In this document: positions 3,001 through 50,438 of the stretch, in pieces
Position numbering within the stretch: position 1 is the stretch's first letter
Layout: the number at the start of each line of letters is the position of its first letter
Assembly: GCA_002269645.1 (NCBI GenBank)
Contig: NIVC01001548.1
Coordinates: 271,976 to 322,413, forward strand
DNA: 50,438 bases
Reading direction: 5' to 3'
From: Macrostomum lignano
Lineage: Eukaryota
The notes under the pieces: model-generated
Seen by the model: only the letters and a program-made list of their open reading frames with translations
Databases searched by the model: none
What the model was told of the DNA's origin: nothing
Made by a program: the position numbers and the translations under genes

Positions 3001-6000
3001 CATAGAAGCGTCATGTAAACAATCATAGAAGCGTCATGTAAAAATCATAGAAGCGTCATGTAAACAATCACTGAAGCGTCATGTAAACAATCATAGAAGC
3101 GTCATGTAAACAATCATAGAAGCGTCATGTAAACAATCATAAAAGCGTCATGTAAAAATCATAAAAGCGTCATGAAAAAATCATAGAAGCGTCATGTAAA
3201 CAATCATAGAAGCGTCATGAAAAAGTCATAGAAGCGTCATATAAACAATCATAGAAGCGTCATGTAAACAATCATAGAAGCGTCATGTAAACAATCATAG
3301 AAGCGTCATGTAAAAAATCATCGAAGCGTCATATAAACAATCACTGAAGCGTCATGTAAAAAATCATAAAAGCGTCATGTAAAAAATCATAGAAGCGTCA
3401 TGTAAAAAATCAGAGAAGCGTCATTTAAAAAAATCATAGAAGCGTCATATAAACAATCATAGAAGCGTCATGTAAACAATCATAGAAGCGTCATATAAAC
3501 AATCATAGAAGCGTCTTTTAAAAAAATCATAGAAGCGTCATCTAAACAATCATAGAAGCGTCATGTAAACAATCATAGAAGCGTCATGTAAAAATCATAG
3601 AAGCGTCATGTAAACAATCATAGAAGCGTCATGTAAACAATCATAGAAGCGTCATGTAAACAATCATGAAGCGTCATGTAAACAATCATAGAAGCGTCAT
3701 GTAAACTAATCATAGAAGCGTCATGTAAAAATCATAGAAGCGTCATGTAAACAATCACTGAAGCGTCATGTAAACAATCATAGAAGCGTCATGTAAACAA
3801 TCATAGAAGCGTCATGTAAACAATCATAAAGCGTCATGTAAAAATCATAAAGCGTCATGAAAAATCATAGAAGCGTCATAAAACAATCATAGAAGCGTCA
3901 TGTAAACAATCATAGAAGCGTCATGTAAACAATCATAGAAGCGTCATGTAAAAAATCATCGAAGCGTCATATAAACAATCACTGAAGCGTCATGTAAACA
4001 ATCATAAAAGCGTCATGTAAAAAATCATAGAAGCGTCATGTAAAAAATCATAGAAGCGTCATTAAAAAAATCATAGAAGCGTCATATAAACAATCATAGA
4101 AGCGTCATGTAAACAATCATAGAAGCGTCATGTAAAAAATCATAGAAGCGTCTTTTAAAAAAATCATAGAAGCGTCATATAAACAATCATAGAAGCGTCA
4201 TGTAAACAATCATAGAAGCGTCATATAAACAATCATAGAAGCGTCTTTTAAAAAAATCATAGAAGCGTCATATAAACAATCATAGAAGCGTCATGTAAAC
4301 AATCATAGAAGCGTCATATAAACAATCATAGAAGCGTCTTTTTAAAAAATCATAGAAGCGTCATATAAACAATCATAGAAGCGTCATGTAAACAATCATA
4401 GAAGCGTGATGTAAAAAATCATAGAAGCGTCATATAAACAATCATAGAAGCGTCATATAAACAATCATAGAAGCGTCATGTAAACAATCATAGAAGCGTG
4501 ATGTAAAAAATCATAGAAGCGTCATGTAAACAATCATAGAAGCGTGATGTAAACAATCATAGAAGCGTCATGTAAACAATCATGAAGCGTCATGTAAACA
4601 ATCATAGAAGCGTCATGTAAACAATCATAGAAGCGTCATGTAAAAATCATAGAAGCGTCATGTAAACAATCATGAAGCGTCATGTAAACAATCATAGAAG
4701 CGTCATGTAAACAATCATAGAAGCGTCATGTAAACAATCATAAAGCGTCATGTAAAAATCATAAAAGCGTCATGAAAAATCATAGAAGCGTCATATAAAA
4801 ATCATAGAAGCGTCATGTAAACAATCATAAAGCGTCATGTAAACAATCATAGAAGCGTCATGTAAAAATCATAGAAGCGTCATATAAACAATCATGAAGC
4901 GTCATGTAAACAATCATAGAAGCGTCATATAAACAATCATAGAAGCGTCTTAAAAAATCATAGAAGCGTCATATAAACAATCATAGAAGCGTCATGTAAA
5001 CAATCATAGAAGCGTCATATAAACAATCATAGAAGCGTCATTAAAAATCATAGAAGCGTCATATAAACAATCATAGAAGCGTCATGTAAACAATCATAGA
5101 AGCGTCATGTAAAAATCATAGAAGCGTCATGTAAACAATCATAGAAGCGTCATATAAACAATCATAGAAGCGTCATGTAAACAATCATAGAAGCGTCATG
5201 TAAAAATCATAGAAGCGTCATGTAAACAATCATAGAAGCGTCATGTAAACAATCATAGAAGCGTCATGTAAACAATCATAGAAGCGTCATGTAAACAATC
5301 ATAGAAGCGTCATGTAAACAATCATAGAAGCGTCATGTAAAAATCATAGAAGCGTCATGTAAACAATCATAGAAGCGTCATGTAAACAATCATAGAAGCG
5401 TCATGTAAACAATCATAGAAGCGTCATGTAAACAATCATAGAAGCGTCATGTAAACAATCATAAAGCGTCATGAAAAATCATAGAAGCGTCATGTAAAAA
5501 TCATAGAAGCGTCATGTAAACAATCATAGAAGCGTCATGTAAACAATCATAGAAGCGTCATGTAAAAATCATCGAAGCGTCATATAAACAATAACTGAAG
5601 CGTCATGTAAACAATCATAAAAGCGTCATGTAAAAAATCATAGAAGCGTCATGTAAAAAATCATAGAAGCGTCATGTAAACAATCATGAAGCGTCATTTA
5701 AAAATCATAGAAGCGTCATATAAACAATCATGAAGCTTCATTTAAAAAATCATAGAAGCGTCATATAAACAATCATAGAAGCGTCTTTTAAAAAATCATA
5801 GAAGCGTCATATAAACAATCATAGAAGCGTCATGTAAACAATCATAGAAGCGTCATGTAAAAAATCATAGAAGCGTCATGTAAACAATCATAGAAGCGTC
5901 ATGTAAAAAATCATAGAAGCGTCATGTAAACAATCATAGAAGCGTCATGTAAACAATCATAAAGCGTCATGTAAAAATCATGAAGCGTCATAAAACAATC

Positions 6001-9000
6001 ATAGAAGCGTCATGTAAAAATCATAAAGCGTCATGTAAAAAATCATAGAAGCGTCATGTAAACAATCATAGAAGCGTCATTAAAAAATCATAGAAGCGTC
6101 ATATAAACAATCATAGAAGCGTCATTAAAAAATCATAGAAGCGTCATATAAACAATCATAGAAGCGTCATGTAAACAATCATAGAAGCGTCATGTAAAAA
6201 ATCATAGAAGCGTCATGTAAACAATCATAGAAGCGTCATGTAAAAATCATAGAAGCGTCATGTAAACAATCATGAAGCGTCATGTAAACAATCATAGAAG
6301 CGTCATGTAAACAATCATAGAAGCGTCATGTAAAAATCATAGAAGCGTCATGTAAACAATCATGAAGCGTCATGTAAACAATCATAGAAGCGTCATGTAA
6401 ACAATCATAGAAGCGTCATGTAAACAATCATAAAGCGTCATGTAAAAATCATAAAAGCGTCATGAAAAATCATAGAAGCGTCATATAAAAATCATAGAAG
6501 CGTCATGTAAACAATCATAGAAGCGTCATGTAAACAATCATAGAAGCGTCATGTAAAAATCATAGAAGCGTCATATAAACAATCATGAAGCGTCATGTAA
6601 AAAATCATAAAGCGTCATGTAAAAAATCATAGAAGCGTCATGTAAAAATCATAGAAGCGTCATTAAAAAAATAGAAGCGTCATATAAACAATCATAGAAG
6701 CGTCATGTAAACAATCATAGAAGCGTCATATAAACAATCATAGAAGCGTCTTTTAAAAAATCATAGAAGCGTCATATAAACAATCATAGAAGCGTCATGT
6801 AAACAATCATAGAAGCGTCATGTAAAAATCATAGAAGCGTCATGTAAACAATCATAGAAGCGTCATGTAAAAATCATAGAAGCGTCATGTAAACAATCAT
6901 GAAGCGTCATGTAAACAATCATAGAAGCGTCATGTAAACAATCATAGAAGCGTCATGTAAAAATCATAGAAGCGTCATGTAAACAATCATGAAGCGTCAT
7001 GTAAACAATCATAGAAGCGTCATGTAAACAATCATAGAAGCGTCATGTAAACAATCATAGCGTCATGTAAAAATCATAGCGTCATGTAAACAATCATAGA
7101 AGCGTCATATAAACAATCATAGAAGCGTCATGTAAACAATCATAGAAGCGTCATGTAAACAATCATAGAAGCGTCATGTAAAAATCATAGAAGCGTCATG
7201 TAAACAATCATGAAGCGTCATGTAAACAATCATAAAGCGTCATGTAAAAATCATAGAAGCGTCATGTAAAAATCATAGAAGCGTCATTAAAAAATCATAG
7301 AAGCGTCATATAAACAATCATAGAAGCGTCATGTAAACAATCATAGAAGCGTCATGTAAAAAATCATAGAAGCGTCATAAAAAATCATAGAAGCGTCATG
7401 TAAACAATCATAGAAGCGTCATGTAAAAATCATAGAAGCGTCATATAAACAATCATAGAAGCGTCATTAAAAAATCATAGAAGCGTCATATAAACAATCA
7501 TAGAAGCGTCATGTAAACAATCATAGAAGCGTCATATAAACAATCATAGAAGCGTCATTAAACAATCATAGAAGCGTCATATAAACAATCATAGAAGCGT
7601 CATGTAAACAATCATAGAAGCGTCATTAAAAAATCATAGAAGCGTCATATAAACAATCATAGAAGCGTCATGTAAACAATCATAGAAGCGTCATGTAAAC
7701 AATCATAGAAGCGTCATATAAAAATCATAGAAGCGTCATGTAAACAATCATAGAAGCGTCATGTAAACAATCATAGAAGCGTCATGTAAACAATCATAGA
7801 AGCGTCATGTAAACAATCATAGAAGCGTCATGTAAACAATCATAGAAGCGTCATGTAAACAATCATAGAAGCGTCATGTAAACAATCATAGAAGCGTCAT
7901 GTAAACAATCATAGAAGCGTCATGTAAACAATCATAGAAGCGTCATGTAAACAATCATGAAGCGTCATGTAAACAATCATAGAAGCGTCATGTAAACAAT
8001 CATAGAAGCGTCATGTAAACAATCATAAAGCGTCATGTAAAAATCATAGAAGCGTCATGTAAACAATCATAGAAGCGTCATGTAAACAATCATAGAAGCG
8101 TCATGTAAACAATCATAGAAGCGTCATGTAAACAATCATAAGCGTCATGTAAAAAATCATCGAAGCGTCATGTAAACAATCATAAAGCGTCATGTAAAAA
8201 TCATAGAAGCGTCATGTAAAAATCATAGAAGCGTCATTAAAAAATCATAGAAGCGTCATATAAACAATCATAGAAGCGTCATTAAAAATCATAGAAGCGT
8301 CATATAAACAATCATAGAAGCGTCATGTAAACAATCATAGAAGCGTCATTAAAAAATCATAGAAGCGTCATGTAAACAATCATAGAAGCGTCATGTAAAA
8401 ATCATAGAAGCGTCATGTAAACAATCATAGAAGCGTCATGTAAACAATCATAGAAGCGTCATGTAAACAATCATAGAAGCGTCATGTAAACAATCATAGA
8501 AGCGTCATGTAAACAATCATAGAAGCGTCATGTAAACAATCATAGAAGCGTCATGTAAACAATCATAGAAGCGTCATGTAAACAATCATGAAGCGTCATG
8601 TAAACAATCATAGAAGCGTCATGTAAACAATCATAGAAGCGTCATGTAAAAATCATAGAAGCGTCATGTAAAAAATCATAGAAGCGTCATGTAAAAATCA
8701 TAGAAGCGTCATGTAAAAATCATAGAAGCGTCATGTAAAAAATCATAGAAGCGTCATGTAAACAATCATAGAAGCGTCATGTAAAAATCATAGAAGCGTC
8801 ATGTAAACAATCATAGAAGCGTCATGTAAACAATCATAGAAGCGTCATGTAAAAATCATAGAAGCGTCATGTAAACAATCATAGAAGCGTCATGTAAACA
8901 ATCATAGAAGCGTCATGTAAAAATCATAGAAGCGTCATGTAAACAATCATAGAAGCGTCATGAAACAATCATAGAAGCGTCATGTAAAAATCATAGAAGC

Positions 9001-9780
9001 GTCATGTAAAAAATCATAGAAGCGTCATGTAAAAATCATAGAAGCGTCATGTAAAAAATCATAGAAGCGTCATGTAAACAATCATAGAAGCGTCATGTAA
9101 AAATCATAGAAGCGTCATGTAAACAATCATAGAAGCGTCATGTAAAAATCATAGAAGCGTCATGTAAAAATCATAGAAGCGTCATGTAAAAATCATAGAA
9201 GCGTCATGTAAAAATCATAGAAGCGTCATGTAAAAATCATAGAAGCGTCATGTAAAAAATCATAGAAGCGTCATGTAAAAATCATAGAAGCGTCATGTAA
9301 AAATCATAGAAGCGTCATGCAAAAAATCATAGAAGCGTCTGTAGCAATCATAGAAGCGTCATGTAAAAATCATAGAAGCGTCATGTAAACAATCATAGAA
9401 GCGTCATGTAAACAATCATAGAAGCGTCATGCAAAAAATCATAGAAGCGTCATGTAAACAATCATAGAAGTCATGTAAAAATCATAGAAGCGTCATGTAA
9501 ACAATCATAGAAGCGTCATGTAAACAATCATAGAATCGTCATGTAAAAATCATAGAAGCGTCATGCAAACAATTATAGAATCGTCATGTAAAAATCATAG
9601 AAGCGTCATGCAAACAATTATAGAAGCGTCATGTAAAAATCATAGAAGCGTCATGTAAACAATCATAGAAGCGTCATCAAAAGATCATAGAAGCCTGATA
9701 TAAAAACTAATGGAAGTGTCATTTGAGAAATCATAGAAGCGTCATGGAAGAATAAAAGAAGCGTCATGTCAGACATGAAA
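1..9780. repeat. Tandem satellite, 23-bp monomer AATCATAGAAGCGTCATGTAAAC (~425-435 copies), runs off the window start
   Basis: 23-bp period read directly (TAAACAATC at 301 and 324). Variants include GTAAAA, ATAAAC, TTAAAA, CACTGAAG, CATCGAAG and many 1-2 bp deletions. It decays progressively after ~9540. Confidence 0.99.
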
Positions 9781-9789
9781 GAAGTGTCA

Positions 9790-10900
9790 TGTAAAAATTA
9801 AAAGAAGCTATTGTGCTGTGCTGGGGAGAATTACTAAGATGTCAAGGCTCACGGAGAATAACTGAGATTTTGGGGAGGCGGTTTCTGAGATGCCAGAGAA
9901 GCAAAGTAGCAAACGTCAGAAGCTACTTCAAAGTACATGTAGTTTACTTAATTTTTTATTACATTCTTTGTTGGCTCGCTACGGGGAGGGGGCGCTGATA
10001 GAAGAAGAGTCATGTAAAAAAGAAAAGAAGCACTATGTATACATAAAAGAAGAGTCATTATGTCAAAGTTAAAAGATTCATTTGGGAATTGCTACGATGC
10101 CAAGGCTTGGAGGGAATCGCTATGGTGCTGTGATTCTTAAATAAGGAATCACTAAAATGTCAAGGCTTAGGGGAGAAGAATTGCTGAGATTTAAGGCTTT
10201 AGGTTGGGTTAAAGTTAGGTTTAGGTCAGGTTTTGGTTGATGGTTAGATTTTAGCGGGTTTCAAGATTAACAGGGGATTTTTAAGATATCAAGGTTTATG
10301 GGGGGCATCGCTAACATGACAAGGCTTACGGGGGGAATAGCTGAGATGTCAAGGCTCACGGGGAATAACCGAGATGTCAAGGCTAAATTCACAAGCTACA
10401 TGTAGATGATGTAGTTTATTGAAAAATGTTTTCATTATTTGGCTCTTCACGGGAAGGATCGCTGATAGATAAAGTGTAATGTAAAAAATAAAAGAAGCTT
10501 CATGTCGAAGTTAAGAGATTCATTTGGGAATCCCTACGATGTCGAGGCTTGCAGGGAATCGCTATAATGCTGTAGTGCTATAATGACTCTCGGAGAGAAT
10601 TACTGAAATGTCAATGCTTTAGGGTTAGGGTTAGGGTTAGGGTTAGGGTTAGGGTTAGGGTTAGGGTTAGGTTTAGAAGGTTAACAGATTTTTTAAGATT
10701 TCAAGGCTTATGGGGGGAATTGCTAAGATGTCAAGGGGGAGTTGATATGCTAAGGCTTGTGGGGGGGGGAGGAATTGCTGGCATGTCAAGGCTTACAAGG
10801 GGTTGCTGAGGTATAATGCAAAGAGACGCTTATATGTAGTTTATTAAAAAACTTGTGCTGTATTTTTTGGCTCCCCAACGGGGGGCGCTGATTGCTAGTC
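9790..10900. repeat. Degenerate ~430-470-bp triplicated junction sequence between the satellite and the LINE target
   Basis: TGTAGTTTA...TTGGCTC...CGCTGAT block at ~9938, ~10410 and ~10835. GATTCATTTGGGAAT at 10075 and 10517. Contains relics of the satellite monomer and of a GAATTGCTGAGATGTCAAG minisatellite. Confidence 0.75.
10619..10671 (+). repeat. Interstitial telomeric repeat (TTAGGG)8 + TTAGG
   Basis: Eight perfect TTAGGG units 10619-10666, then TTAGGTTTAG. Confidence 0.97.
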
Positions 10901-11398: not shown

Positions 11399-12976
11399 GT
11401 GGAGCGGCCGGGTGGGTACCGCGCCCCTTTGAGGGTAGCCCACCAACCTTTTATCATGGCCTTCGAGCCGACTATGGATAAACAAGCTATTTCTAGGGAC
11501 GGGGACCCTTCTAAACCCCAACCTCAGTCCGAAGGACCGGCCGGCCCTGCTGGCAGATCCCAACCGACTGATTCAACTGTGGCAAAGGAAGGACCGGCTG
11601 GCTCTGCTGGCAGATCCGACCAGAGCTACCAAACTCAAAATACCCTAAGACCTGCCAGCTCCGCTGGTGGATCTAAGGGAACCGCGAGCTCTGAGCCTAA
11701 AGGACCGGCCAAATCTGGCAGATCCGATGAAGCTCAGCGGGCTCGGCTTGAGCGCAAACGCGCTAAACAACGCGCCAAAAGGCAGGCCAAGAAGGGAGCT
11801 GCGGGGGCCAAAGCGGCGGCGTCCACCATGGATGCTGAAGCGACTGGAGTCCCAAGGCAACCAGGCGGGCCGGCCGGTGGAAGCTCCAGTAGTTCAGCGG
11901 CGGCGCTCCCTGGAGCTGCTGCCGCGGCTGCTGAGGCCGAAACCACGGCGCAACAAATGGCCACTGCCAACAAGGAGGTTCCTTCGGGAGCTACCTTTGC
12001 GGCGAAGGCCAAGGCCAAAATCCCGGGAGTGATCATCCAAGGTCGCGACCAGGACTGGACCACTGATCAGCTTCAAAAAGTGTGGAGTGCTGTTGACTCC
12101 TATCTGATTGAGCTGACTGTCGAGGAGGGAATCTCCATCGGCGTTGAGCGGATGGTGCTGCGAAGCACATTCGTTCTTATTGCTCCTAGCAGCGAGGAGG
12201 ACGCTCGGCGGCTGCTCCAGCGGCTACCGACGGTCTCCTTGGATGCTGACCTTGGTGGAGCTCTTTTTCTTCGCGAGGGCCAGCGTCCAAAGACGATACC
12301 CTATGTGGTTTTCGTCCCTGCTAAGAGCACCGCAGCTGGACCAGACGTTATTCGCCGGGTCCTACTGCGTCTGAACCCCGACCTCCCTGCTAGTGGACTG
12401 GTGTATCACCGCAAAGTCCGCAGGGGGGAGACGGGCAACTCAATTGTCCTCGGCCTTTCCAGCACTTGGGCGAGTCGGTACCCTAATGGATCCTCTTTCC
12501 AGCTGGGTGCCCTCAAGCTCAAGTTGCGCCGAGGAAAGTCTGCCAAAGGGAAGGCTACTGCCAACCCCGGCATCTCCGGCAAGAGCGGGGCGCAGTCTAA
12601 GGCCCAAGGAAAGGCGCAAGCCGATCCCAAAGCCAAAGCTGCATCTCGCCCCTCTGCTAGCAGCAGTTCGGCGACCGCGGTAACGGCTCCGGCCGAGCCC
12701 CGGGAACCAAACCTGCCAGTCGGAGAAGGAGTTGAGGACGAGGCCGGGTCTTCGGAATCCGAGCTCTCCTCGGCCACCTTGGTGGGGTCTGAAGGTAAAG
12801 ATGCAGGTGAGGAAGCTTCCTCCATCCTGTCATCGGAGCCTGAGGACTCTGCTGGGGGGCCGGTGGGGGTGAGGAGGCCATGGACGTCGACCAACTCCCA
12901 TCTCCCAGTCAAGCCCCAGCGGCCTGGGACGAGGACGATCTGTTGTCCAAGTCTCCTTGATGGCCCTGGGCTCTAG
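11399..12976 (+). CDS. LINE ORF1 (gag-like), low-complexity basic/acidic protein; first ATGs at 11456 and 11474
   Basis: 525-codon ORF directly upstream of ORF2. Three EGPAG.AGRS-type repeats, a basic RKRAKQRAKRQAKK stretch and an acidic C-terminus. No CCHC knuckle visible. Confidence 0.8.
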   Translation: MERPGGYRAPLRVAHQPFIMAFEPTMDKQAISRDGDPSKPQPQSEGPAGPAGRSQPTDSTVAKEGPAGSAGRSDQSYQTQNTLRPASSAGGSKGTASSEPKGPAKSGRSDEAQRARLERKRAKQRAKRQAKKGAAGAKAAASTMDAEATGVPRQPGGPAGGSSSSSAAALPGAAAAAAEAETTAQQMATANKEVPSGATFAAKAKAKIPGVIIQGRDQDWTTDQLQKVWSAVDSYLIELTVEEGISIGVERMVLRSTFVLIAPSSEEDARRLLQRLPTVSLDADLGGALFLREGQRPKTIPYVVFVPAKSTAAGPDVIRRVLLRLNPDLPASGLVYHRKVRRGETGNSIVLGLSSTWASRYPNGSSFQLGALKLKLRRGKSAKGKATANPGISGKSGAQSKAQGKAQADPKAKAASRPSASSSSATAVTAPAEPREPNLPVGEGVEDEAGSSESELSSATLVGSEGKDAGEEASSILSSEPEDSAGGPVGVRRPWTSTNSHLPVKPQRPGTRTICCPSLLDGPGL

Positions 12977-12999
12977 CCAGATATTGCATTTAATACAGT

Positions 13000-15900
13000 A
13001 TGACTAAGCTCCACGCTGCCAAAGGAGCGACATTCTGTCTGCAAATAAATTTACAGCATTGCGTATCTGCGTCAGTAAATCTGATGAAGATTGCTGAGCT
13101 GTACAGGCCAGGCCTCATCCTGATCCAGGAACCCTGGATGCGCAACGGTAAGTTGCCCAACATTCCCTCTGGCTACTCTGATTTTTATGTGTGTGGCCCG
13201 GGGAACAGCCGCCCTAGAGCGGCTATCCTCGCTGCTAGCCATCTCCAGGCTTGGCTGAGGACTGATCTCTCTGATGGAGACCTTTGCGTCATCCAATCTA
13301 ATCATTTCTCTCCGCGTACGTGTCTTGTTGCCTCGGTTTATATCCCAGGCGACAGAGACCCTGCTCCCGAGAGTTTACTGCGCCTTGCGCAGTACTGCGA
13401 GTCCCAGAACGCTGAGCTGTGCTTAGGGGGCGACCTCAACGCGCACCACAAGCACTGGGGCAGCAAAGATACCAACACTAGAGGAGAGGAGCTTCTGGCC
13501 CTCATCTCTAACACAAACCTCATGCTCTGCAACCGCGGCAGCACTCCTACCTTTAATAATGGCAGATGGACCGAGGTCCTCGACGCCACACTCGTTACCC
13601 CAAGACTCTTTGACAGAGTCAAGGAGTGGAGAGTCTGGTCTGAGGAGCCCTCCCTGTCTGACCACTGCTTTATCGCCTTTAATATCGCGGACACTAAAAC
13701 CCAGTCTCCGATCACTTGGAGACGCAATATCCGCAACACTGATTGGGCGGCCTACAAGGCTGCCCTTGATCTGCACCTGCAGGAACTCACGGACTTACGT
13801 CCGATTGAGACCTGCGAGGATGTGGATCATATGGCTGAGACGCTGACAGGTTGCATTATTGCAGCCTACGAAGCGGCTTGTCCTGCTCGCGCCTACAGAG
13901 GCAAGACCTCGGCGCCGTGGTGGAACCCGGAGCTGGGGAAACTCAGGCGGAAGGCCAAAAGCCTTCATCGCCGTGCCATGAAGACCGGAAACCCGGAGGA
14001 CATGGAGCTTTTCCGGCAAGCCTCCCGCAATTTCAAATCTGAAGTGCGCAAGGCCAAGGAATGTAAGTGGCGCCAATTCTGCAATGAATTGGATCAAGAC
14101 AGACCTACTTCTAGGCTTGTCAAGGCCCTTACAATGGACAAAATGTCCAAATTAGCCATGATCAAAAAAGATGATGGCTCTCTTACTAAAGACCCTGAAG
14201 AAGTGCTTCAGCATATGCTTAGCACATTCTTCCCGAGGGTACCTACTGCTAGACCGGAGCCCAACCATTCGATGGATGGAGCCACCCTAGCGGCGGGCAT
14301 TGTCACTGAAGACCTAATCGCTCGTGCGGTCAGAACCTTCAAACCCTTCAAATCTCCTGGACCTGATGGTATCTACCCTGTTCTCCTTCGTGAAGCAGCC
14401 AAGATACCCTCGTTCCTGAGACTCACCCGCAATCTTATGCGGGCCTCTATCCAGCTGGGATACGTTCCCAAAAGCTGGACTGAAGCTCGAGTAGTCTTTA
14501 TTCCCAAACCTGGGAAGGGTGACTACCAAAGCGTCAAGGCCTTCCGGCCAATTAGCTTAACGTCAGCAATGCTTAAGCTCACTGAGAGGCTTATTCTCTG
14601 GCGGCTGCTCTCCTGCGAGCTGACAGCGATGCCCCTCAGCAATAATCAGCACGCCTTCCGTACCGGGAGGTCGACTGACAGCGCCCTGCATGCGATTGTC
14701 GAAAAGATTGAACGGGCGGTACTGGGTGACGGTTACGCCCTGGCTCTCTTTCTTGACATTGTTGGCGCCTTCGACAACGTTATCTTTGAAGCGTTTCAGA
14801 GGGCCCTTCAAAATCGCAAAGCTCATGCTACCCTCATACGGTGGATCATGTACATGATCTCCAACCGTACGGTCACTGCCCAACTTCTTGGGCAAACTGC
14901 CTCCACCAGAGTCTGTAAGGGTGGACCCCAAGGCGGAGTCCTCACCCCGACGCTCTGGAACCTGGTCATGGACGCTCTTCTGAGTGACTCCCGACCTGAC
15001 CCCGTCTTCAAAGTCGGGTATGCTGATGACGTCACGGCCATTGTGGCAGGACCGTCTCCCAGCACGCTCAGGGATCTGATGCAGAGCTTTATCCGCAAAG
15101 CAGAATCCTGGGCCAATGACAATGGTTTGGAACTCTCTGAGCCCAAAACCGTTGCCATTATGTTTACCAGCAGACTACGCTGGAACATACGTCCTCTGCA
15201 GCTCTACGGCAGAGATATTGCCTTCGCGCACCAGACCAGATGTCTCGGGGTCACACTTGACCACCGGCTCAACTGGTCCTTCCACGTGAAAGCAAAAGCT
15301 AAGCGTGCCTCAGCCATCCTGGCCCAGCTCCGACGAGCACTTGGCACTTCTTGGGGTCTATCCCCAAAGCGGCTTTGGTGGATCTATACTTCCGTAGTTA
15401 GACCTGCCATTACGTACGCCTCTGTTGTCTGGGTTAGCGCTACCCAGGTCAAAAGCCATGCAGACCTGCTCAACACGATCCAAGGCAGAGCGTGTAGGCT
15501 CATCTGCAACGCCACCAGGTCCACGCCCTTTGCTGGCATGGGGGCCTTTCTTAATCTTCCGCCTCTTGACCTCTTCATCAGGGGTGAGGCGGCTAGAACG
15601 ACGCGGCGTCTAATTGATGCCGGCGTCAAATTCATTTACATGAGAGCACCTGCTAAGCGGAACCTTGTCCCGCATAGCGATCTGTGCCTCAACTTTCTCA
15701 ACGAGTGTCAGGCCAATCGCGTCTTCACCGATGGCATTGCCTCAACGCTCAACCTGAGACAGCGCTACTCCGTAGCTATCGACTCGCGCGATAACATCAA
15801 TGACCATTGGAACCCTGGTGAGCTTCATTGCTACACCGACGGTTCTAAGCAGTCAGCCAACACCGGCTTTGGTGTTGGAATCTTTCTGAACGGGAGGGTC

Positions 15901-16740
15901 ATCGCTACCCACGCTCAATACACTGGGGTCAACTCCAGTGTTTTCCAAAATGAAGTTCTGGCCATCAGCTCCTGCACTGCAGAGCTTCTCGCCACTGGCG
16001 TTACTGGTAAGAACATCATTTTCCATTCGGACAGCCAAGCTGCCTTGCACGCCATCAGTGGCTGCAGCACCAACTCTGCTACAGTCCTTGACTGTATCAA
16101 ACTCCTCAATGTGTTGGGTTCCGCCAACAAAATTACCCTTAAGTGGGTTCCGGGGCATGTGGGGATCCGAGGAAATGAGTTGGCTGACACCCTTGCAAAA
16201 GTTGGTGCCTCCGGCTCCTCTCTCGGCCCCGAACCTCTTGTCCCGATTCCTGGCTGTGTCATCGACTCGCGCATCAAAGCGTGGATCAGGACTCAGCACC
16301 GCTCGACTTGGGCGAACCGCACGAACTGCAGGCAATCCAGAGGCGCTGTCCCTCAGCCCTCTCACCAGCTCCGGAAGCTCCTCTTGCGCCTCTCGCGCAG
16401 AGACATCCGGGCTGCCACCATGACCCTCTCTGGTCACGGCTGCTTCTCCAGGCACCAGTACCTGCAGGGCAACGCCACCAACGCCACCTGTAGTTTCTGC
16501 AACTCAGGTGACGAAACCGCTGAGCATTTCGTCAGCATCTGTCCCGCCTTCACGCGGGCCAGACTCACTTACCTCGGGCCACACACATCTATTACTGAAG
16601 CGTGCAAACCCGAAAACTTTAATCAGCTCATGCGCTACCTTCGGGCCACCCGCAGGGCTGAACTCTCCTTTCCAGAGAGCACCATAGCTGCTGGCGACAC
16701 TGGGGGACCTCCCTGGGCGGCGCCAACCCTCCGTCCATAG
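13000..16740 (+). CDS. LINE ORF2 polyprotein: apurinic endonuclease, reverse transcriptase, RNase H, C-terminal CCHC
   Basis: EN motifs QINLQH, LIQEP, GGDLNAHH, SDH. RT motifs KSPGPDG, FRPISL, QHAFRTGRST, FLDIVGAFD, PQGGVLTP, YADD. RNase H motifs YTDGSK, SDSQAAL, WVPGH..I.GNELAD. C-terminal CSFC..ETAEHFVSIC. 1246 aa with no stops. Confidence 0.98.
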   Translation: MTKLHAAKGATFCLQINLQHCVSASVNLMKIAELYRPGLILIQEPWMRNGKLPNIPSGYSDFYVCGPGNSRPRAAILAASHLQAWLRTDLSDGDLCVIQSNHFSPRTCLVASVYIPGDRDPAPESLLRLAQYCESQNAELCLGGDLNAHHKHWGSKDTNTRGEELLALISNTNLMLCNRGSTPTFNNGRWTEVLDATLVTPRLFDRVKEWRVWSEEPSLSDHCFIAFNIADTKTQSPITWRRNIRNTDWAAYKAALDLHLQELTDLRPIETCEDVDHMAETLTGCIIAAYEAACPARAYRGKTSAPWWNPELGKLRRKAKSLHRRAMKTGNPEDMELFRQASRNFKSEVRKAKECKWRQFCNELDQDRPTSRLVKALTMDKMSKLAMIKKDDGSLTKDPEEVLQHMLSTFFPRVPTARPEPNHSMDGATLAAGIVTEDLIARAVRTFKPFKSPGPDGIYPVLLREAAKIPSFLRLTRNLMRASIQLGYVPKSWTEARVVFIPKPGKGDYQSVKAFRPISLTSAMLKLTERLILWRLLSCELTAMPLSNNQHAFRTGRSTDSALHAIVEKIERAVLGDGYALALFLDIVGAFDNVIFEAFQRALQNRKAHATLIRWIMYMISNRTVTAQLLGQTASTRVCKGGPQGGVLTPTLWNLVMDALLSDSRPDPVFKVGYADDVTAIVAGPSPSTLRDLMQSFIRKAESWANDNGLELSEPKTVAIMFTSRLRWNIRPLQLYGRDIAFAHQTRCLGVTLDHRLNWSFHVKAKAKRASAILAQLRRALGTSWGLSPKRLWWIYTSVVRPAITYASVVWVSATQVKSHADLLNTIQGRACRLICNATRSTPFAGMGAFLNLPPLDLFIRGEAARTTRRLIDAGVKFIYMRAPAKRNLVPHSDLCLNFLNECQANRVFTDGIASTLNLRQRYSVAIDSRDNINDHWNPGELHCYTDGSKQSANTGFGVGIFLNGRVIATHAQYTGVNSSVFQNEVLAISSCTAELLATGVTGKNIIFHSDSQAALHAISGCSTNSATVLDCIKLLNVLGSANKITLKWVPGHVGIRGNELADTLAKVGASGSSLGPEPLVPIPGCVIDSRIKAWIRTQHRSTWANRTNCRQSRGAVPQPSHQLRKLLLRLSRRDIRAATMTLSGHGCFSRHQYLQGNATNATCSFCNSGDETAEHFVSICPAFTRARLTYLGPHTSITEACKPENFNQLMRYLRATRRAELSFPESTIAAGDTGGPPWAAPTLRP

Positions 16741-18050: not shown

Positions 18051-19414
18051 CTGAAACGGTGTCAACGGCTCGTCTTTGGAGTTTTCATCACTCGAACCGC
18101 CCCCGCCTACAACAGTATCGCCAACCAGAGCCTCTCTGGTGCTGCGCATACTACTAATTAAGTAGCCAACCAGGCCGCAACTTAGCGAGTCGATGGGCTG
18201 CGGCTCGGGCCTGAACACGCCGACCTCTTTAACCGTGTGAGCAATTTTGGGTTGATGCAAGCTGCGAAATTCGTCACCAGGTTTTAGGAGGCCGGATTTG
18301 GCCGCCACAAGACAGACGGCGCCTTTGTAGGGCTCGAACCAGGAGTCAACGATTAGGCCTTTGAAGCTGGACGAGCGGTGGTCGGCTTGATCAGCAGTGG
18401 AGGGCGGTGGTATTCGGTGAACAATGGCTTCCAGTAGCTGGTCAATGTTGATGGCCTTTTTGGCTGACACCTCAATTACCTGGGAGGAGGGGTTAGGCGA
18501 GGGAGATGGTAGATAAGGGTGAGGGAGATGGTAGATAAGGAAGTGAGGTAGATAACGGAATGAGGTAGATAAGGGAGTGAGGGAGATAACGGAATGAGGT
18601 AGATAAGGGAGTGAGGGAGATAACGGAATGAGGTAGATAAGGGAGTGAGGGAGATAAGGGAGTGAGGTAGATAAGGGATTGAGGTAGATAAGGGATTGAG
18701 GTAGATAAGGGAGTGAGGTAGATAAGGGATTGAGGTAGATAAGGGATTAAGGTAGATAAGGGATTGAGGTAGATAAGGGAGTGGGGTAGATAAGGGAGTG
18801 AGGGAGATAAGGGAGTGGGGTAGATAAGGGATTGAGGTAGATAAGGGATTGAGGTAGATAAGGGAGTGAGGTAGATAAGGGAGTGAGGTAGATAAGGGAG
18901 TGAGGTAGATAAGGGAGTGAGGTAGATAAGAACAAGAAATGGTGCAGGCAATTCTCACCTGGTCAGGCTCAATGCCGAACAAACTCTGGAGCTGTTTTTT
19001 CACCTCATCCGGTTTGGCATTGGGCAGGTCGATCTTGTTAATCACAGGTATGATCGGCAGCTCGGCCGTGAAGGCCAGGAAATAGTTGGCGATGGTCTGC
19101 GCCTGAACACCATCGTTGGCGTCAACCAGCAGCACGACGCCGTCCGAAGCGGCCACCGAACGGTGCACTTCGTGGCTGAAATCCACGTGACCCGGCGTGT
19201 CCACCAGGTTGAGCAGGTAGGTGGACCCAGTGCTGGGGGACTGGTAGAACAAGGCGACCGTCTGTGCCTTGATGGTGATGCCGCGGTCGCGCTCGATTTT
19301 CAGCCGGTCCAGCACCTGCTGGTTCTGGGGACCGGCCTGGATGGCGCCTGGGGGCAGGGTTGGGATGCTGGATGACAGACAGACAGACAGACAGACGGAC
19401 AGACAGACAGGCAC

Positions 19415-19461
<47 letters not shown>

Positions 19462-19866
19462 CACAGCTCACCAGTGCACTCCAGCAGTCTATCAGAGAGT
19501 GTACTCTTCCCGTGGTCCACATGAGCAATGATGCTGAAGTTGCGAATCAAGCTGGTGTCGAACTTGCTGAGGTCAAGCGGTGCGGGCTGCAAGGTGTTAA
19601 TGAAATGCTGAATAGAATTAATTATAAAATCTATTTTTAGAACTCGATGGTCAGAACTAAGCAGAGCGCAGGTCTCACTTTGCTAGCAGGCTTTGAGAAC
19701 AGTCGATGCAGAGGTTTAAAAGCGAATTGCAGGGATCTGAAAGCAGAAAATAACAGGCCAAGTCAATATCGAACAACCTACATACCTGCAGATGAAACTA
19801 TTTTTAAGTTTACACTGTAAATTCTTACCGCAATAACCTTTCACACCTGCCGCATAGATGAATCAT
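18051..19866 (-). CDS. GUF1: Translation factor GUF1/LepA (EF4), mitochondrial; exons 1-5 only (~337 aa)
   Basis: Exons 19866-19847, 19736-19679, 19586-19472, 19347-18959 and 18479-18051, all GT-AG with matching phases. Motifs [46 protein letters not shown] and [10 protein letters not shown]. Downstream exons not found in the window. Exons 1-2 are less certain. Confidence 0.92.
18497..18930. repeat. 17-bp minisatellite GAGGTAGATAAGGGAGT in GUF1 intron 4
   Basis: Direct reading; lies between donor 18958 and acceptor 18480. Confidence 0.95.
19374..19465. repeat. (ACAG)n microsatellite in GUF1 intron 3
   Basis: Direct reading. Confidence 0.95.
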
Positions 19867-46415: not shown

Positions 46416-49400
46416 ATGACAAGGAGACTGCTTGTCACTGCTGCAGTGCTTGCTGTTTTGCTAAACCTGTGCTCCGCTGGTGTGCCTCCCATTGGACCGC
46501 TTCAAAAAGCTGTAAGTGCCTCTTCCACTACTGCTGCGAAAGGCAAAATGTCCGGCAGCACGGGAAAAAAGGCTACCGGCTCATCCGGCGGGTCAGACCC
46601 TAGCAAGTACCAGGGGGCTTTCGACACGATAGGCTCTGCCATCAGCAGTTCGAATGATCGAACAAAGCAACTGCTCGGCGGGCTCATGGACGCAGTGAAG
46701 AATGACCCTGGCCAACTCATCACGAGGAATATGCTTGACAAGCTGGCGCAGCAGAATTCTTTTCTGCCTCAGAAAGCGGGAACCCGTTCCGTCAGTTTGC
46801 AGTCCGAACAAGGATTCAATGGATTCTCGAACTATCAGCCATCCGGATGGGTCATGACCGAGACTATGAGCGGACCTGCTGAAAAAATGCCACAAACAAC
46901 GGACGAAAGTGTTCCTGTCTACACCTATCCGCAAGGACTTGGTCCTGTGTTAATCAACGGTTGCACAGCAAATAGCTACTCTGAAACCAGCCCCTGCTTT
47001 TCCAGCAAACACCTCGGCAGAGGTAAGGGAATCTGTCCAAATCTCATGGACGCAGCTGCCTACGTGGGTGTGGGATTCGACGGCCGAGGCTATTACAAAA
47101 TCGAGAGCCGGAGAGCCAGTTTGGTACAGCGAGCGTGCTTCAATATGGCCAGCTTCTTAGGCAAGGATGTTCCCGACACGATGAACGTGTTCGGAATCTT
47201 CGAGACCACAGCTGAAACAAGGTCTTTTCAGTCAGCCGATGAGTATCTTCGCTTCATCAGAGAGAAGGCTGGTTTATCTGAACAAAGGAATCTTTTCCTA
47301 AGTGAGGCTACTAAACATTCCAAGTCTAGCGGGTTCGGCATGAACCTCGGTGCGATCGGATCCATTGCTGGGGGTGCGATTGGGGCTGCCGTCGGAGGTC
47401 CTGCGGGTGCCCAGGTGGGAGCTTCTCTCGGAAGCGCTGTTGGAGGAGGCATCGAGGGAGGAACGGCGAGCGGCTCCGGAAGTTCCTCATCCACAAACAA
47501 AGGTACGTCTAGATCTAGTGTGACTCAAACCGATAAGTCAAATGGTCAACAGAGTGCTTCTAACAACTTCTTTGCCATTATGTACGTCAATATCATCCTG
47601 TTCGAGATCACACTAGACGAGGTGAAGCCCAAAGACATAAACCTTGCAGCCTTGAAAGACTACATGAGCCTGCCAGAGTCTTACTTTTCAATCGGAGCTG
47701 ATGTGAGTTACCAGAATTTCCTGCTTCGTTGGGGAACGCACTTCATTCGATCTGGAAAATTCGGTGGGCAATTAAAGATTACAAAGACCGCTAAGACAGA
47801 CAAGCTCAAGTCGGCCCAGGAGTTTGCTAGCATCGCAGAGACCGAGTTTCAGTCGATGTTCTCAACGCTGCAGTCGAAATATTCTCAAGAGAGCAGCAGC
47901 TGGAATGTTTTAGGATTTGGTGGAGAAAAGAATTCTGCGTCGCAGAATTCGAATGGAAAATCTACGTCTCAGTACAGGAGCACTTTGGATCAACGGAGAA
48001 AGCTATCCCAAAGCTTCCGTCAATCAGAGTTTACGCATACCACCGTTGAGGCTCAAGGAGGAACGCCTGAGATCGCCGAAGCTCTTGTGGACTTCTACAC
48101 TCCCGCATTTAGACAACTGTACAACAGGTGGATCGACTCCATCAAGGACTACGTGAAACCGTTCGAGTTCCAGTTGAAGTCTATCGACCAACTATTTAAC
48201 ATGAACATGGATGACCTGTTTCCATCCGGAAATCTTGACTTTGGGTGCATGGGAGGAGCTGGCGGTAAAGTAAAATTTCTAGTGGAACCTGGAACAAAGC
48301 GTCGCTATTATTTAGACGTGGAAACGTCATTTGAAAACAATAAAACAACTACCACTATGGTAAAAACATACTGCAAGTACAATAGTCTTAAAGAGTTCAA
48401 AATTTATTTGGTTAGGCGTAGAATTTCATTAGAGAAGGCAGTGGCGGTGTACATGGCGGAGGGACCATTTCCTACTTCATCATTTGAATTGAATGCTGGA
48501 CAACCTGGATGCGACCAAGAGACTCTGGCTGAGCTGAACCTTTTCAGTAAGGGGACTAGACCTTTGAAATTCGCCGAATTAAGCAAGGCTCCCTTTTTAA
48601 TAGCCTTTGATTTGCCAGCGGATATTCCTAACATGCTCAAATCGAGTGCCAAGTATGTCATGCTTCATCGAGCCGACCGATGGTTTGCCACGGAGCCAGG
48701 ACAAATGCACATACATCTGTATGATGGCTGTCAGCTGGTGGGTTACAAGCCTGCGGAGACGAAGATCTGCTTTAAGAACATCATTCTCACCTACGAGGAA
48801 TCTTCAGGCTTCTTTCATATCGATCCTAAAGACTTTGCTGCATCGAAGCGTCGCAACCCGATCCTTCCAGACTGGCTCCGAGGCTCAACTGTAGCGAGGG
48901 CTTCAAAGATAGACTTATCAAACGGCACCTTTGCGAACTCAGCTTCCGTGCCATGCAATGTGAAGTGGATGAATTCGCACAGACTCGATCCAGGAAAAGA
49001 TGAAAACTGCATTCACTTCACGGCAGCGAGTTCAGGTGACATTTTCGTTAACTTTGCATCCATTCCCAAAGATCACACTACTTGGTACTACCTGCAGATC
49101 AACATGGATGGCGTCGCATTCTATAAGGCGATGCATCTGCAGAAACGAGACTACAAGAAGGGAATGGGAACGCTTGGAGACAGGAACCTCTATCAGTCCT
49201 ATTTTGTGTGCGTGAACCAGGCCGATGGCGAGGTGCTGATGCAGTTCGGCAAGGCTGATTCAAACAGCGACGTCGGCACCGTCTACTCTGGTTACAAATT
49301 CGCTCAGGACAGTCAGTACAGCCGATTGACTTTTTACTCATTCGGCTCCGGCTCCAAGTCCGTGTCATTGATGGACATCCGACTCACGAGACAGATGCCT

Positions 49401-50438
49401 AAAGTGGAATGCCTAAATAACGACTACATTTTGAAGAACGGTCATTGCGTTCTCAACTGCCATAAAGAGTGCATCGACTGCAATCTGGCTAAAGACGACA
49501 AGTCTTGCTTTAAGTGCCGAAATGTGCGGATTGAAATAGCAGGCACTGGAAGTAAACTGAGTAACAAAGTAATTCAGTGCTTGCCAGAGTGTCCGAAAGG
49601 CTACGAGCTGAGTAACAAGGATAAGAAGCTGTGCCAACCTTGCAGTCCTGGTAAATTCAAGGATTCAGTTGGTAATCAAAAGTGCAACACCTGTTTTCCC
49701 GGAAGCTTTAGCGCGTCGGGTGCTTCAAATTGCAGCATATGCAGTCCAGGAACATTCAGCGCAAAGCCGGGATCCGCAGAGTGTGAGAAGTGTCCCGCAG
49801 GATCCGCGGCCAAGTCAAAGGGATCAAGAACGTGCAGTAAATGCAGTGCAGGAACATTTTCTAAAATTGGACAGGTGGAATGCACGCCATGTCCAGTTGG
49901 TCATTTTATTGGAAAAACAGGTCAATCCAAGTGTCAGTTGTGCCAGGCAGGCTTTTATGCTGCAAAGCAGGGCATGCAAGCGTGCACAAAGTGTCCTGCC
50001 GGAACATCGAGCACCGAGGGTTCAGTAAGTTGCGATAACAACTGCAAGAGAGGCGAGTTCAGTCCGAAAAAGGGAGTCGCATGCAAGAAGTGTCAGGCAG
50101 GAACATTCACTCCAAGCTCAGGATCGAGCAGCTGCACACTTTGCCCGACAGGCTCCTTCCAGGCGCAGGAGGGTCAGGGGTCGTGCAGAACGGCCCCAGC
50201 AGGATCGTACGCTGCAGGTCCGGGTGCCAAACGCAGCACACCATGTCCAGCGGGGACCTATAACCCCAAGACAGGAAAGTCCAGCTCATCAAGTTTGTGC
50301 CATGCTCTGCAGGAAGCTATTCAAAGTCGGCTGGCTCTACTGTCTGCACCCGTTGTCCCAAAGGCAGTTACCAACCGCTGAAGAACCAGAAGGAGTGTAA
50401 GAGCGCCAGTCCTGGACGGTTTGTCGAATTAGAAGGTC
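46416..50438 (+). CDS. Secreted MACPF-domain protein with glycine-zipper insertion, furin-like Cys region and >=16 GCC2/GCC3-like (ephrin-receptor-like) Cys repeats; runs off the window
   Basis: Signal peptide MTRRLLVTAAVLAVLLNLCSA. VGVGFDGRG motif and MACPF signature WGTHFIRSGKFGG (W-G-T-H-F-X6-GG, 47730-47768). C..C.PG.F repeats from ~49636. The repeat frame continues after a 1-bp shift at ~50295. Confidence 0.9.

Follow-up and report, generated by a model that had tools for sequence, protein, structure and literature searches.

What does a glycine zipper do in the middle of a membrane hairpin of a MACPF protein? This question is raised by a 50,438-nucleotide stretch of the Macrostomum lignano genome (assembly GCA_002269645.1, contig NIVC01001548.1, positions 271,976 to 322,413 of the forward strand), which we call the window and number from its first letter. 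The window encodes a predicted secreted MACPF protein, and the first transmembrane hairpin region (TMH1) of this protein contains the glycine-rich segment GAIGSIAGGAIGAAVGGPAGAQVGASLGSAVGGGIEGG. To our knowledge, all structurally characterised MACPF/CDC proteins breach membranes by two amphipathic beta-hairpins per subunit. A preliminary description of the window, made from the letters alone, had read the segment as a helix hairpin inserted in TMH1. We find a conserved insertion with helical periodicity and without matching length in the second hairpin region (TMH2), and this insertion may enter the bilayer as a helical hairpin.

Position of the glycine zipper in the MACPF domain

The zipper was read from the translation of the only long open reading frame (ORF) at the site in the ORF list; nucleotides 47330-47520 read from their first base are out of frame, the coding frame being that of the ORF. 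The zipper consists of two parts of about 17 residues on either side of a GG(P) turn, with the first segment closing at G327-G328 and the second covering aa 330-346. Fifteen of its 38 residues are glycine, and the ladder glycines 315, 319, 323, 327, 331, 335, 339 and 343 form eight rungs at exact i+4 spacing that continue straight across the GGP turn. Shuffles of the zipper's own 38 residues gave eight rungs in 94 of 100,000 cases, and shuffles of aa 290-395 in 4 of 100,000. Tandem Repeats Finder detected no DNA-level repeat in 47250-47600, and there is thus no sign of recent slippage or duplication. The preliminary description had the sequence and the ladder right and placed the end at 47463, one base beyond the true end at 47462. 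The Ser/Thr-rich flanks and the three landmarks that it named (GFD, WGTH and WNVLGFGG) are all present. The features of the gene that bear on the position of the zipper are as follows.

46416-50381, plus strand: ORF of the secreted MACPF protein, 1321 aa (ORF list; Pfam MACPF and Ephrin_rec_like)
46416-46478, plus strand: predicted signal peptide MTRRLLVTAAVLAVLLNLCSA, aa 1-21, the top hydrophobic segment, with an inferred cleavage site
47067-47090, plus strand: GVGFDGRG motif, aa 218-225, start of the MACPF domain, kept across the family
47184-47219, plus strand: core sheet strand beta1 NVFGIFETTAET, aa 257-268 (aa 260-271, model residues 121-132, in the AF2 model); pairs with IYETKAD of C9
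47274-47564, plus strand: TMH1/CH1, about aa 287-383, made up of a polar N-arm, the zipper and a Ser/Thr-rich C-arm; lies between beta1 and beta2 and aligns to TMH1 of C6 and C9
47349-47462, plus strand: glycine zipper, aa 312-349
47394-47402, plus strand: GGP turn between the zipper segments, aa 327-329; GG in nine of nine aligned zippers, Pro in most
47565-47612, plus strand: core strand beta2 NFFAIMYVNIILFEIT, aa 384-399 (aa 383-398, model residues 244-259, in the AF2 model), the second most hydrophobic 17-mer of the protein
47730-47768, plus strand: MACPF signature WGTHFIRSGKFGG, aa 439-451, leading into beta3 (sequence and alignment A1)
47790-48026, plus strand: TMH2/CH2, about aa 459-537, 79 residues, between beta3 and beta4
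47901-47924, plus strand: hydrophobic tip of TMH2, WNVLGFGG, aa 496-503 (WGTHF of the signature being aa 439-443), read from the sequence

That the protein is a MACPF protein, as first described, is borne out by Pfam and by structure comparison. Pfam MACPF (PF01823) matched aa 383-597 with 49.1 bits (cut-off 21.5, E = 1e-12); the insert disrupts the alignment, so that the match begins only downstream of the zipper. The signature (Y/W)-G-(T/S)-H-(F/Y)-x6-G-G is present as WGTHF-IRSGKF-GG, and alignment A1 shows no variation at its G, T and H or at F-G of the final FGG. In the AlphaFold2 (AF2) model of aa 140-660, the elements follow the canonical order of beta1, helices, zipper, beta2, a helix-turn-helix with the signature, beta3 (aa 444-461), two long helices (CH2) and beta4 (aa 539-547), which is the order of a bent four-stranded sheet with CH1 between beta1 and beta2 and CH2 between beta3 and beta4 (mean predicted local distance difference test score, pLDDT, 49.9). 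The top 16 Foldseek matches of the model were all MACPF structures (C9, perforin, GNIP1Aa, C6, TgPLP1, Mpf2Ba1, Plu-MACPF and MPEG1), led by 6CXO (C9), with a probability of 1.00 and template modelling (TM) scores of only 0.2-0.35.

The A1 profile matched C6, C9, C8alpha and perforin-1 in the PDB at E = 1e-8 to 1e-7. In the alignment to C9, the insertion point of the zipper falls opposite 'EKGAG-EVSP', midway between beta1 and beta2 of C9; this stretch of C9 is its TMH1, and its middle forms the hairpin tip in the membrane attack complex. Since the zipper divides TMH1 into arms of about 25 and about 35 residues, it lies at or near the tip. Judged by alignment and model, the zipper sits mid-TMH1, at the hairpin tip, and the model does not place it outside TMH1, so that the location given in the preliminary description stands. 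A residue-by-residue profile alignment showed no glycine zipper in TMH1 of C6 and C9, and we know of none in TMH1 of the other solved MACPF proteins.

Conservation of the insertion and lengths of the two hairpins

An exact look-up of the window protein in public assemblies returned no record. An exhaustive representative search gathered 226 relatives of the protein; word-indexed homologue searches were either swamped by low-complexity words or empty (5 matches, 11 with a profile, and none with a zipper-free query of 121 aa). The nearest named relatives are M. lignano proteins at 64% identity, one other assembly contig reaching 67%, and more remote members (35-41%) occur in Branchiostoma, Lingula, Nematostella, the hemichordate Glandiceps and a rotifer. 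The zipper is carried by the window protein (WIN), P0006, P0007 (with cluster members P0153 and P0154), P0001, P0010 and P0017, and further by the fragments P0055, P0068, P0042 and P0045. It is found in at least ten sequence clusters from M. lignano and mostly marine metagenomes, including Tara Oceans, the carriers sampled being mostly anonymous metagenome contigs. About 30 columns of A1 are occupied solely in the window protein, P0006, P0007, P0001, P0010 and P0017. In the zipper's place, the TMH1 tip of amphioxus and Lingula proteins is short and Gly/aromatic, GAGGGAFGLGWSAGGG, and cnidarian-type proteins lack about 70 residues at this region of A1. Relative to these zipper-less relatives, the zipper is, by alignment, an insertion.

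The glycine ladder is kept among relatives at 44-67% overall identity, and nine zipper sequences share the consensus G.NLG.IGAIAGAAIGA.AGGPAGA.MGA.LG.A.GGSI with six invariant glycines. At the DNA level, nine glycine columns are invariant in the window, the second assembly contig, M. lignano and a Tara contig, with GGA, GGC, GGG and GGT mixed in nearly all nine. Across these four DNA sequences, positions with the same residue and a different codon exceed identical codons two- to three-fold or more. Invariant glycines with differing third codon positions point to purifying selection on the residues, not to shared descent of a DNA repeat. An unspliced intron was ruled out by the conserved residues with synonymous changes and by the uninterrupted 3846-nt ORF of M. 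lignano.

In a neighbour-joining tree built from about 150 flanking MACPF columns, the zipper carriers were monophyletic in 0 of 200 bootstraps and fell, together with three sequences lacking the zipper, into a clade with 95% support. Because the carriers are not monophyletic in this tree, the zipper is either an old element with losses or was gained twice.

Three sequences in and around the family deserve a remark of their own. P0016, a zipper-less member of the zipper clade, has a short GPIGGLSAGHGSG ladder at its TMH1 tip (aa 97-109), perhaps what is left of a zipper that was deleted. P0002, a family fragment with 56% identity, is filed as 'MAG: Kangiellaceae bacterium' (GCA_036350755.1, the 1250-bp contig L005), most likely through eukaryotic contamination of a bacterial bin. 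P0150 is a bacterial protein of 258 aa without MACPF domain (L008, 6001-6777), encoded beside an AraC regulator and a molybdopterin oxidoreductase; its zipper IGTIAGGALGTVIGGPAGTAIGAKLGGTLGG, including the GGP turn, is 46% identical over the zipper and makes it the nearest stand-alone look-alike. A horizontal origin from such a bacterial zipper was considered; the likeness lies in a low-complexity segment, and we read it as likely convergence.

The lengths of TMH1 and TMH2, measured between fixed landmarks across the family, fall into the following classes (residues).

Cnidarian, hemichordate and some amphioxus members: TMH1 26, TMH2 43
Amphioxus and Lingula members: TMH1 65, TMH2 75
Other members, class a: TMH1 64, TMH2 80
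Other members, class b: TMH1 70, TMH2 85
Other members, class c: TMH1 82, TMH2 99
Zipper carriers: TMH1 98, TMH2 79

With the zipper clade left out, the two lengths co-vary with r = 0.97 (n = 21), as expected if both hairpins pair in one barrel, and the discrete co-varying classes suggest barrels of different heights within one family. The zipper-less P0016, a relative of the carriers, has lengths of 65/79. The zipper thus represents about 33 additional TMH1 residues without a counterpart in TMH2, and for this reason it cannot be an ordinary barrel strand. The preliminary description had named a normal short WNVLGFGG tip for the second region; TMH2 as a whole is about 79 residues long and not short, and the two lengths co-vary in the family.

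Helical character of the zipper and its possible roles

Alignment-averaged hydropathy and glycine occupancy peak at 90-95 degrees per residue (a period of 3.8-4.0 residues) in both halves of the zipper and are lower at 170-180 degrees; in each half, a single aliphatic stripe (I/L/V/M) is accompanied by a single glycine stripe. The conserved periodicity of the zipper is therefore helical. DSSP assigned helices at aa 320-326 and 328-343 of the AF2 model (pLDDT <35); with such very low confidence in TMH1, the helices drawn there are weak evidence. Among the 17-mers of the protein, the first half ranks third in hydrophobicity (Kyte-Doolittle value, KD, 1.61), the most hydrophobic stretch being the signal peptide (KD 2.36). 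In a simple sum on the Hessa scale, the two halves scored +5.1 and +9.5 kcal/mol and the signal peptide -0.08 kcal/mol. By these sums the translocon should let the zipper through for secretion, as with toxin segments that insert post-translationally.

The window zipper has two (G/A/S)xxxGxxxG ladders with a short turn, which is the build of known glycine-zipper families. When nine zippers (eight MACPF-borne and the bacterial stand-alone one) were scanned against Pfam, Gly-zipper_YMGG, Glycine zipper 2TM and Gly-zipper_Omp gave near full-length matches, with at most six of the nine zippers at E <= 1 and a best E of 6.3e-05, all below the gathering score. Scores under the curated cut-offs mean resemblance and not membership, and homology is not established. 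A phmmer search of the PDB with the zipper alone returned no matches. Of the helix hairpin of the preliminary description, the helical periodicity was recovered, while the AlphaFold confidence there (<35) and the sub-threshold Pfam scores give it no further footing.

We propose that the zipper forms a helical hairpin at the tip of TMH1 that enters the bilayer and packs with its neighbours, the polar arms forming a solvent-exposed barrel; from sequence, model and analogy, we put this at about an even chance. The protein would leave the cell in soluble form because the zipper is too weakly hydrophobic for a Sec61 stop-transfer, and the lectin-like and Cys-rich C-terminal modules would bring it to a target surface. 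After oligomerisation via the MACPF domain, TMH1 and TMH2 would unfurl, and their long polar arms would make up the part of the barrel that faces the solvent. The zipper would then enter the bilayer as an alpha-helical hairpin with an aliphatic and a glycine stripe on each helix, and the hairpins of adjacent protomers would pack glycine face to glycine face. Such packing would resemble the ring of SlyB hairpins with two transmembrane segments (2TM), or the zippers of TelE, Tde1 and EsxX. Of this scheme, the element, its place, its nature as a conserved insertion, its helical periodicity and the lack of matching length in TMH2 are observed; that it is a helix hairpin, inserts in the membrane, packs laterally and forms a pore is what we infer. 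Its furthest form, an alpha/beta hybrid pore in which a SlyB-like transmembrane palisade of zipper helical hairpins, one per protomer, forms the end of a tall polar MACPF beta-barrel, with helices instead of strands crossing the bilayer, is doubtful. In such a pore, by our geometric estimate, the two helices of each protomer would tile about the same arc as the four strands above.

The zipper might instead be a longer Gly-rich beta-hairpin tip whose transmembrane strands resemble a staphylococcal alpha-haemolysin-type stem. TMHs of MACPF proteins are known to form beta-hairpins, the Gly/aromatic tip GAGGGAFGLGWSAGGG of the zipper-less relatives could have expanded into the zipper, and in a strand, too, i+4 spacing puts the glycines on a single face. 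However, the 33 extra residues break the length rule of the family and would add strands without partners, and two strands of about 19 residues would extend for some 60 Angstrom, about twice the bilayer. The conserved hydropathy period is not the 2 residues of a strand and, from the sequence, neither strand has a polar face, so that we consider such a tip unlikely. Equally unlikely, in our judgement, is that packed GxxxG helices serve as a latch of the soluble state, holding TMH1 on the MACPF sheet and braking premature assembly, and play no part in the membrane. In soluble MACPF proteins the helical CH1 lies packed against the sheet, TMH1 of C9 was reportedly found to be a brake on self-assembly in the 6CXO study, and GxxxG helices occur in soluble proteins too, the PDB matches of the zipper profile including ARH3 helices. 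Yet the first half of the zipper is as hydrophobic as a marginal transmembrane segment and has no polar face, its nearest sequence families are membrane glycine zippers, and the second aliphatic stripe would be needless in a latch.

A Gly/Ala/Ser spacer of low complexity, lacking any particular structure or function, would fit the Ser/Thr/Gly-rich, poorly modelled surroundings (pLDDT <35) and the lack of a tandem DNA repeat and of a significant family match. This is very improbable, since the nine glycines and the aliphatic positions hold their register at 44-67% overall identity with differing synonymous codons, and the ladder is rare even for its composition. We give hardly any credence to a co-translationally inserted 2TM anchor that would hold the protein in a secretory-granule membrane or in that of the cell producing it. 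Among MACPF proteins, MPEG1 is anchored in the membrane, and two hydrophobic segments with a turn of 2-3 residues do look like a helical-hairpin anchor, but the Hessa-scale sums of the zipper halves, compared with that of the signal peptide, are far from the Sec61 integration range.

The proposed helical hairpin in the bilayer has to be held against several results that speak against it. The AF2 model of aa 140-660 has a predicted TM score of 0.38 besides its low mean pLDDT, which falls to 23-31 over TMH1. The second half of the zipper is only mildly hydrophobic (KD 0.72-0.96). The window zipper scored 13.8, 11.6 and 11.0 bits against PF05433, PF13488 and PF13441, with cut-offs of 28.9, 24.2 and 25. 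The zipper profile recovered no solved glycine-zipper structure from the PDB, SlyB included, and only chance-level GxxxG helices (ARH3, LolC). In the TMH regions hydrophobicity is limited to the tips; the arms are polar, their beta moment is low (0.08-0.54) and they show almost no amphipathic alternation, so that the family might form no classical transmembrane barrel, or no pore. The distant family members are all annotated 'uncharacterized'.

Known systems, C-terminal modules and genomic surroundings

Compared with the solved MACPF proteins (C9, C6, perforin-1, MPEG1, GNIP1Aa, Plu-MACPF and TgPLP1), the window protein has the same domain and signature and the same order beta1-CH1-beta2-HTH-beta3-CH2-beta4, HTH being the helix-turn-helix. 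The TMH arms in the 65/75 class are C9-like in length, but here they lack a clear amphipathic alternation. Instead of TSP1, LDLa, EGF, C2 or P2 domains, the protein has a galectin/ConA-like module and Ephrin_rec_like repeats. The TSP1, LDLa, EGF or C2 domains of the terminal complement proteins and perforin-1 were not found here, and neither were the P2 domain and C-terminal transmembrane helix of MPEG1/perforin-2, the galectin/ConA-like module following the MACPF domain in their place. True homologues are Branchiostoma LOC118430059/C3YB58, Lingula LOC106160199, Nematostella A7S0A0, Glandiceps LOC144439719 and M. lignano PAA49111.1. These metazoan members are 35-64% identical over the MACPF domain and a module of 440 aa that follows it; the M. 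lignano members carry the zipper, whereas the amphioxus, Lingula, hemichordate and cnidarian members are without these roughly 30 residues.

In VacA, the repeated GxxxG of the N-terminus is needed for membrane permeabilisation or translocation. Like SlyB, YfgH and OsmB, the window zipper has two GxxxG-ladder segments and a short turn, but these bacterial 2TM glycine zippers are small stand-alone lipoproteins, while here the element is embedded in the hairpin of an animal MACPF protein. The 2TM zippers of SlyB and YfgH are alpha-helical, membrane-embedded and ring-forming (bioRxiv 10.64898/2025.12.22.696046). Glycine zippers are required for the membrane action of Tde1, TelE, EsxX and CdzC/D (PMC10240207, PMC5380434). 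Repeated GxxxG is likewise what the window zipper has in common with the glycine-zipper toxins, namely TelE and EsxX from type VII secretion (T7SS), Tde1 of the type VI system (T6SS), Caulobacter CdzC/D and the VacA N-terminus, and with A-beta; these are unrelated proteins, none of them joined to a beta-pore-forming domain.

We found no paper joining a glycine zipper or GxxxG with MACPF, none joining MACPF with Ephrin_rec_like, and no solved MACPF structure with such a zipper; the two papers found that combine Macrostomum and MACPF concern MPEG1 and adhesion, not the family of the window protein. Judged by the aligned C6 and C9 segments and the literature searched, the zipper is not a common feature of described MACPF families. 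We found the conserved TMH1 glycine zipper in none of the described MACPF proteins; it marks a sub-clade and, with at least ten clusters carrying it, is not unique to the window. This sub-clade belongs to a large uncharacterised family of MACPF-plus-lectin-like proteins in amphioxus, brachiopods, hemichordates, cnidarians, rotifers and flatworms. If the proposed helical hairpin is correct, it would be a new way for a MACPF/CDC protein to engage the bilayer, as an anchor, a lateral zipper between protomers or a membrane-spanning part, and it would link animal pore-formers with the bacterial zipper modules of SlyB and of T6SS and T7SS toxins. The stepped TMH lengths (26/43, 65/75 and 98/79) offer a natural series on hairpin length, tip chemistry and pore architecture. 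Since M. lignano is a laboratory model with RNA interference, the biology can be tested.

Downstream of the MACPF domain, the gene has two further features.

48279-49595, plus strand: module of about 440 aa after the MACPF domain, aa 622-1060, with a Cys-rich end (phmmer, AF2, Foldseek)
49632-50279, plus strand: six or more in-frame Cys-rich repeats of the Ephrin_rec_like (GCC2/GCC3-type) kind (Pfam PF07699, E = 2e-27, six stretches)

The 440-aa module is conserved across the family, its lowest phmmer E-values being 1e-88 with amphioxus relatives and 1e-77 with Lingula; a Pfam scan of the module gave no family match. Its AF2 model (pLDDT 79.5) matched galectin carbohydrate recognition domains in Foldseek with target-normalised TM-scores of 0.55-0.62, which points to a beta-sandwich of the galectin/ConA-like/legume-lectin type and makes the module a candidate carbohydrate-targeting domain. 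Pfam found no TSP1, LDLa, EGF or C2 accessory domain in the ORF. No C-terminal transmembrane-like segment is among the top hydropathy peaks of the ORF, the 3' end of which is incomplete, so that a distal transmembrane helix is possible. The final 33 or so codons of the ORF (…SSSSSLCHALQEAIQS…*) depart from the Cys-repeat pattern (window 50280-50438), and an alternative frame extends the Cys-rich repeat (…KFVPCSAGSYSKSAGSTVCTRCPKGSYQPLKNQKECKSASPGRFVELEG) stop-free to the window end. There is an apparent frame change within a poly-Ser run, which may be an assembly indel or genuine. The gene very likely runs past the window end; its relatives have 1281-1685 aa.

The remainder of the window is rich in repeats. 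A 23-bp satellite, AGCGTCATGTAAACAATCATAGA, fills positions 1-9795 (9.8 kb) with about 435 copies and is followed by about ten TTAGGG telomere-type repeats at 10619-10676, and more than 25 further satellite arrays are spread across 16.9-42.4 kb. By its sequence, the setting looks subtelomeric or heterochromatic. A retrotransposon of the long interspersed element (LINE) type, without long terminal repeats, lies at 11399-16740 on the plus strand, with an intact ORF of 1246 aa encoding an apurinic/apyrimidinic (AP) endonuclease, reverse transcriptase and RNase H; an ORF of 525 aa upstream of it, without Pfam match, is possibly its ORF1. Beside a 17-bp tandem array, an ORF of 350 aa at 18476-19528 on the minus strand aligns to positions 39-164 of the 188-position profile for the GTP-binding domain of EF-Tu type (E = 2e-36) and probably represents part of a translational GTPase gene, either an exon or a gene fragment.

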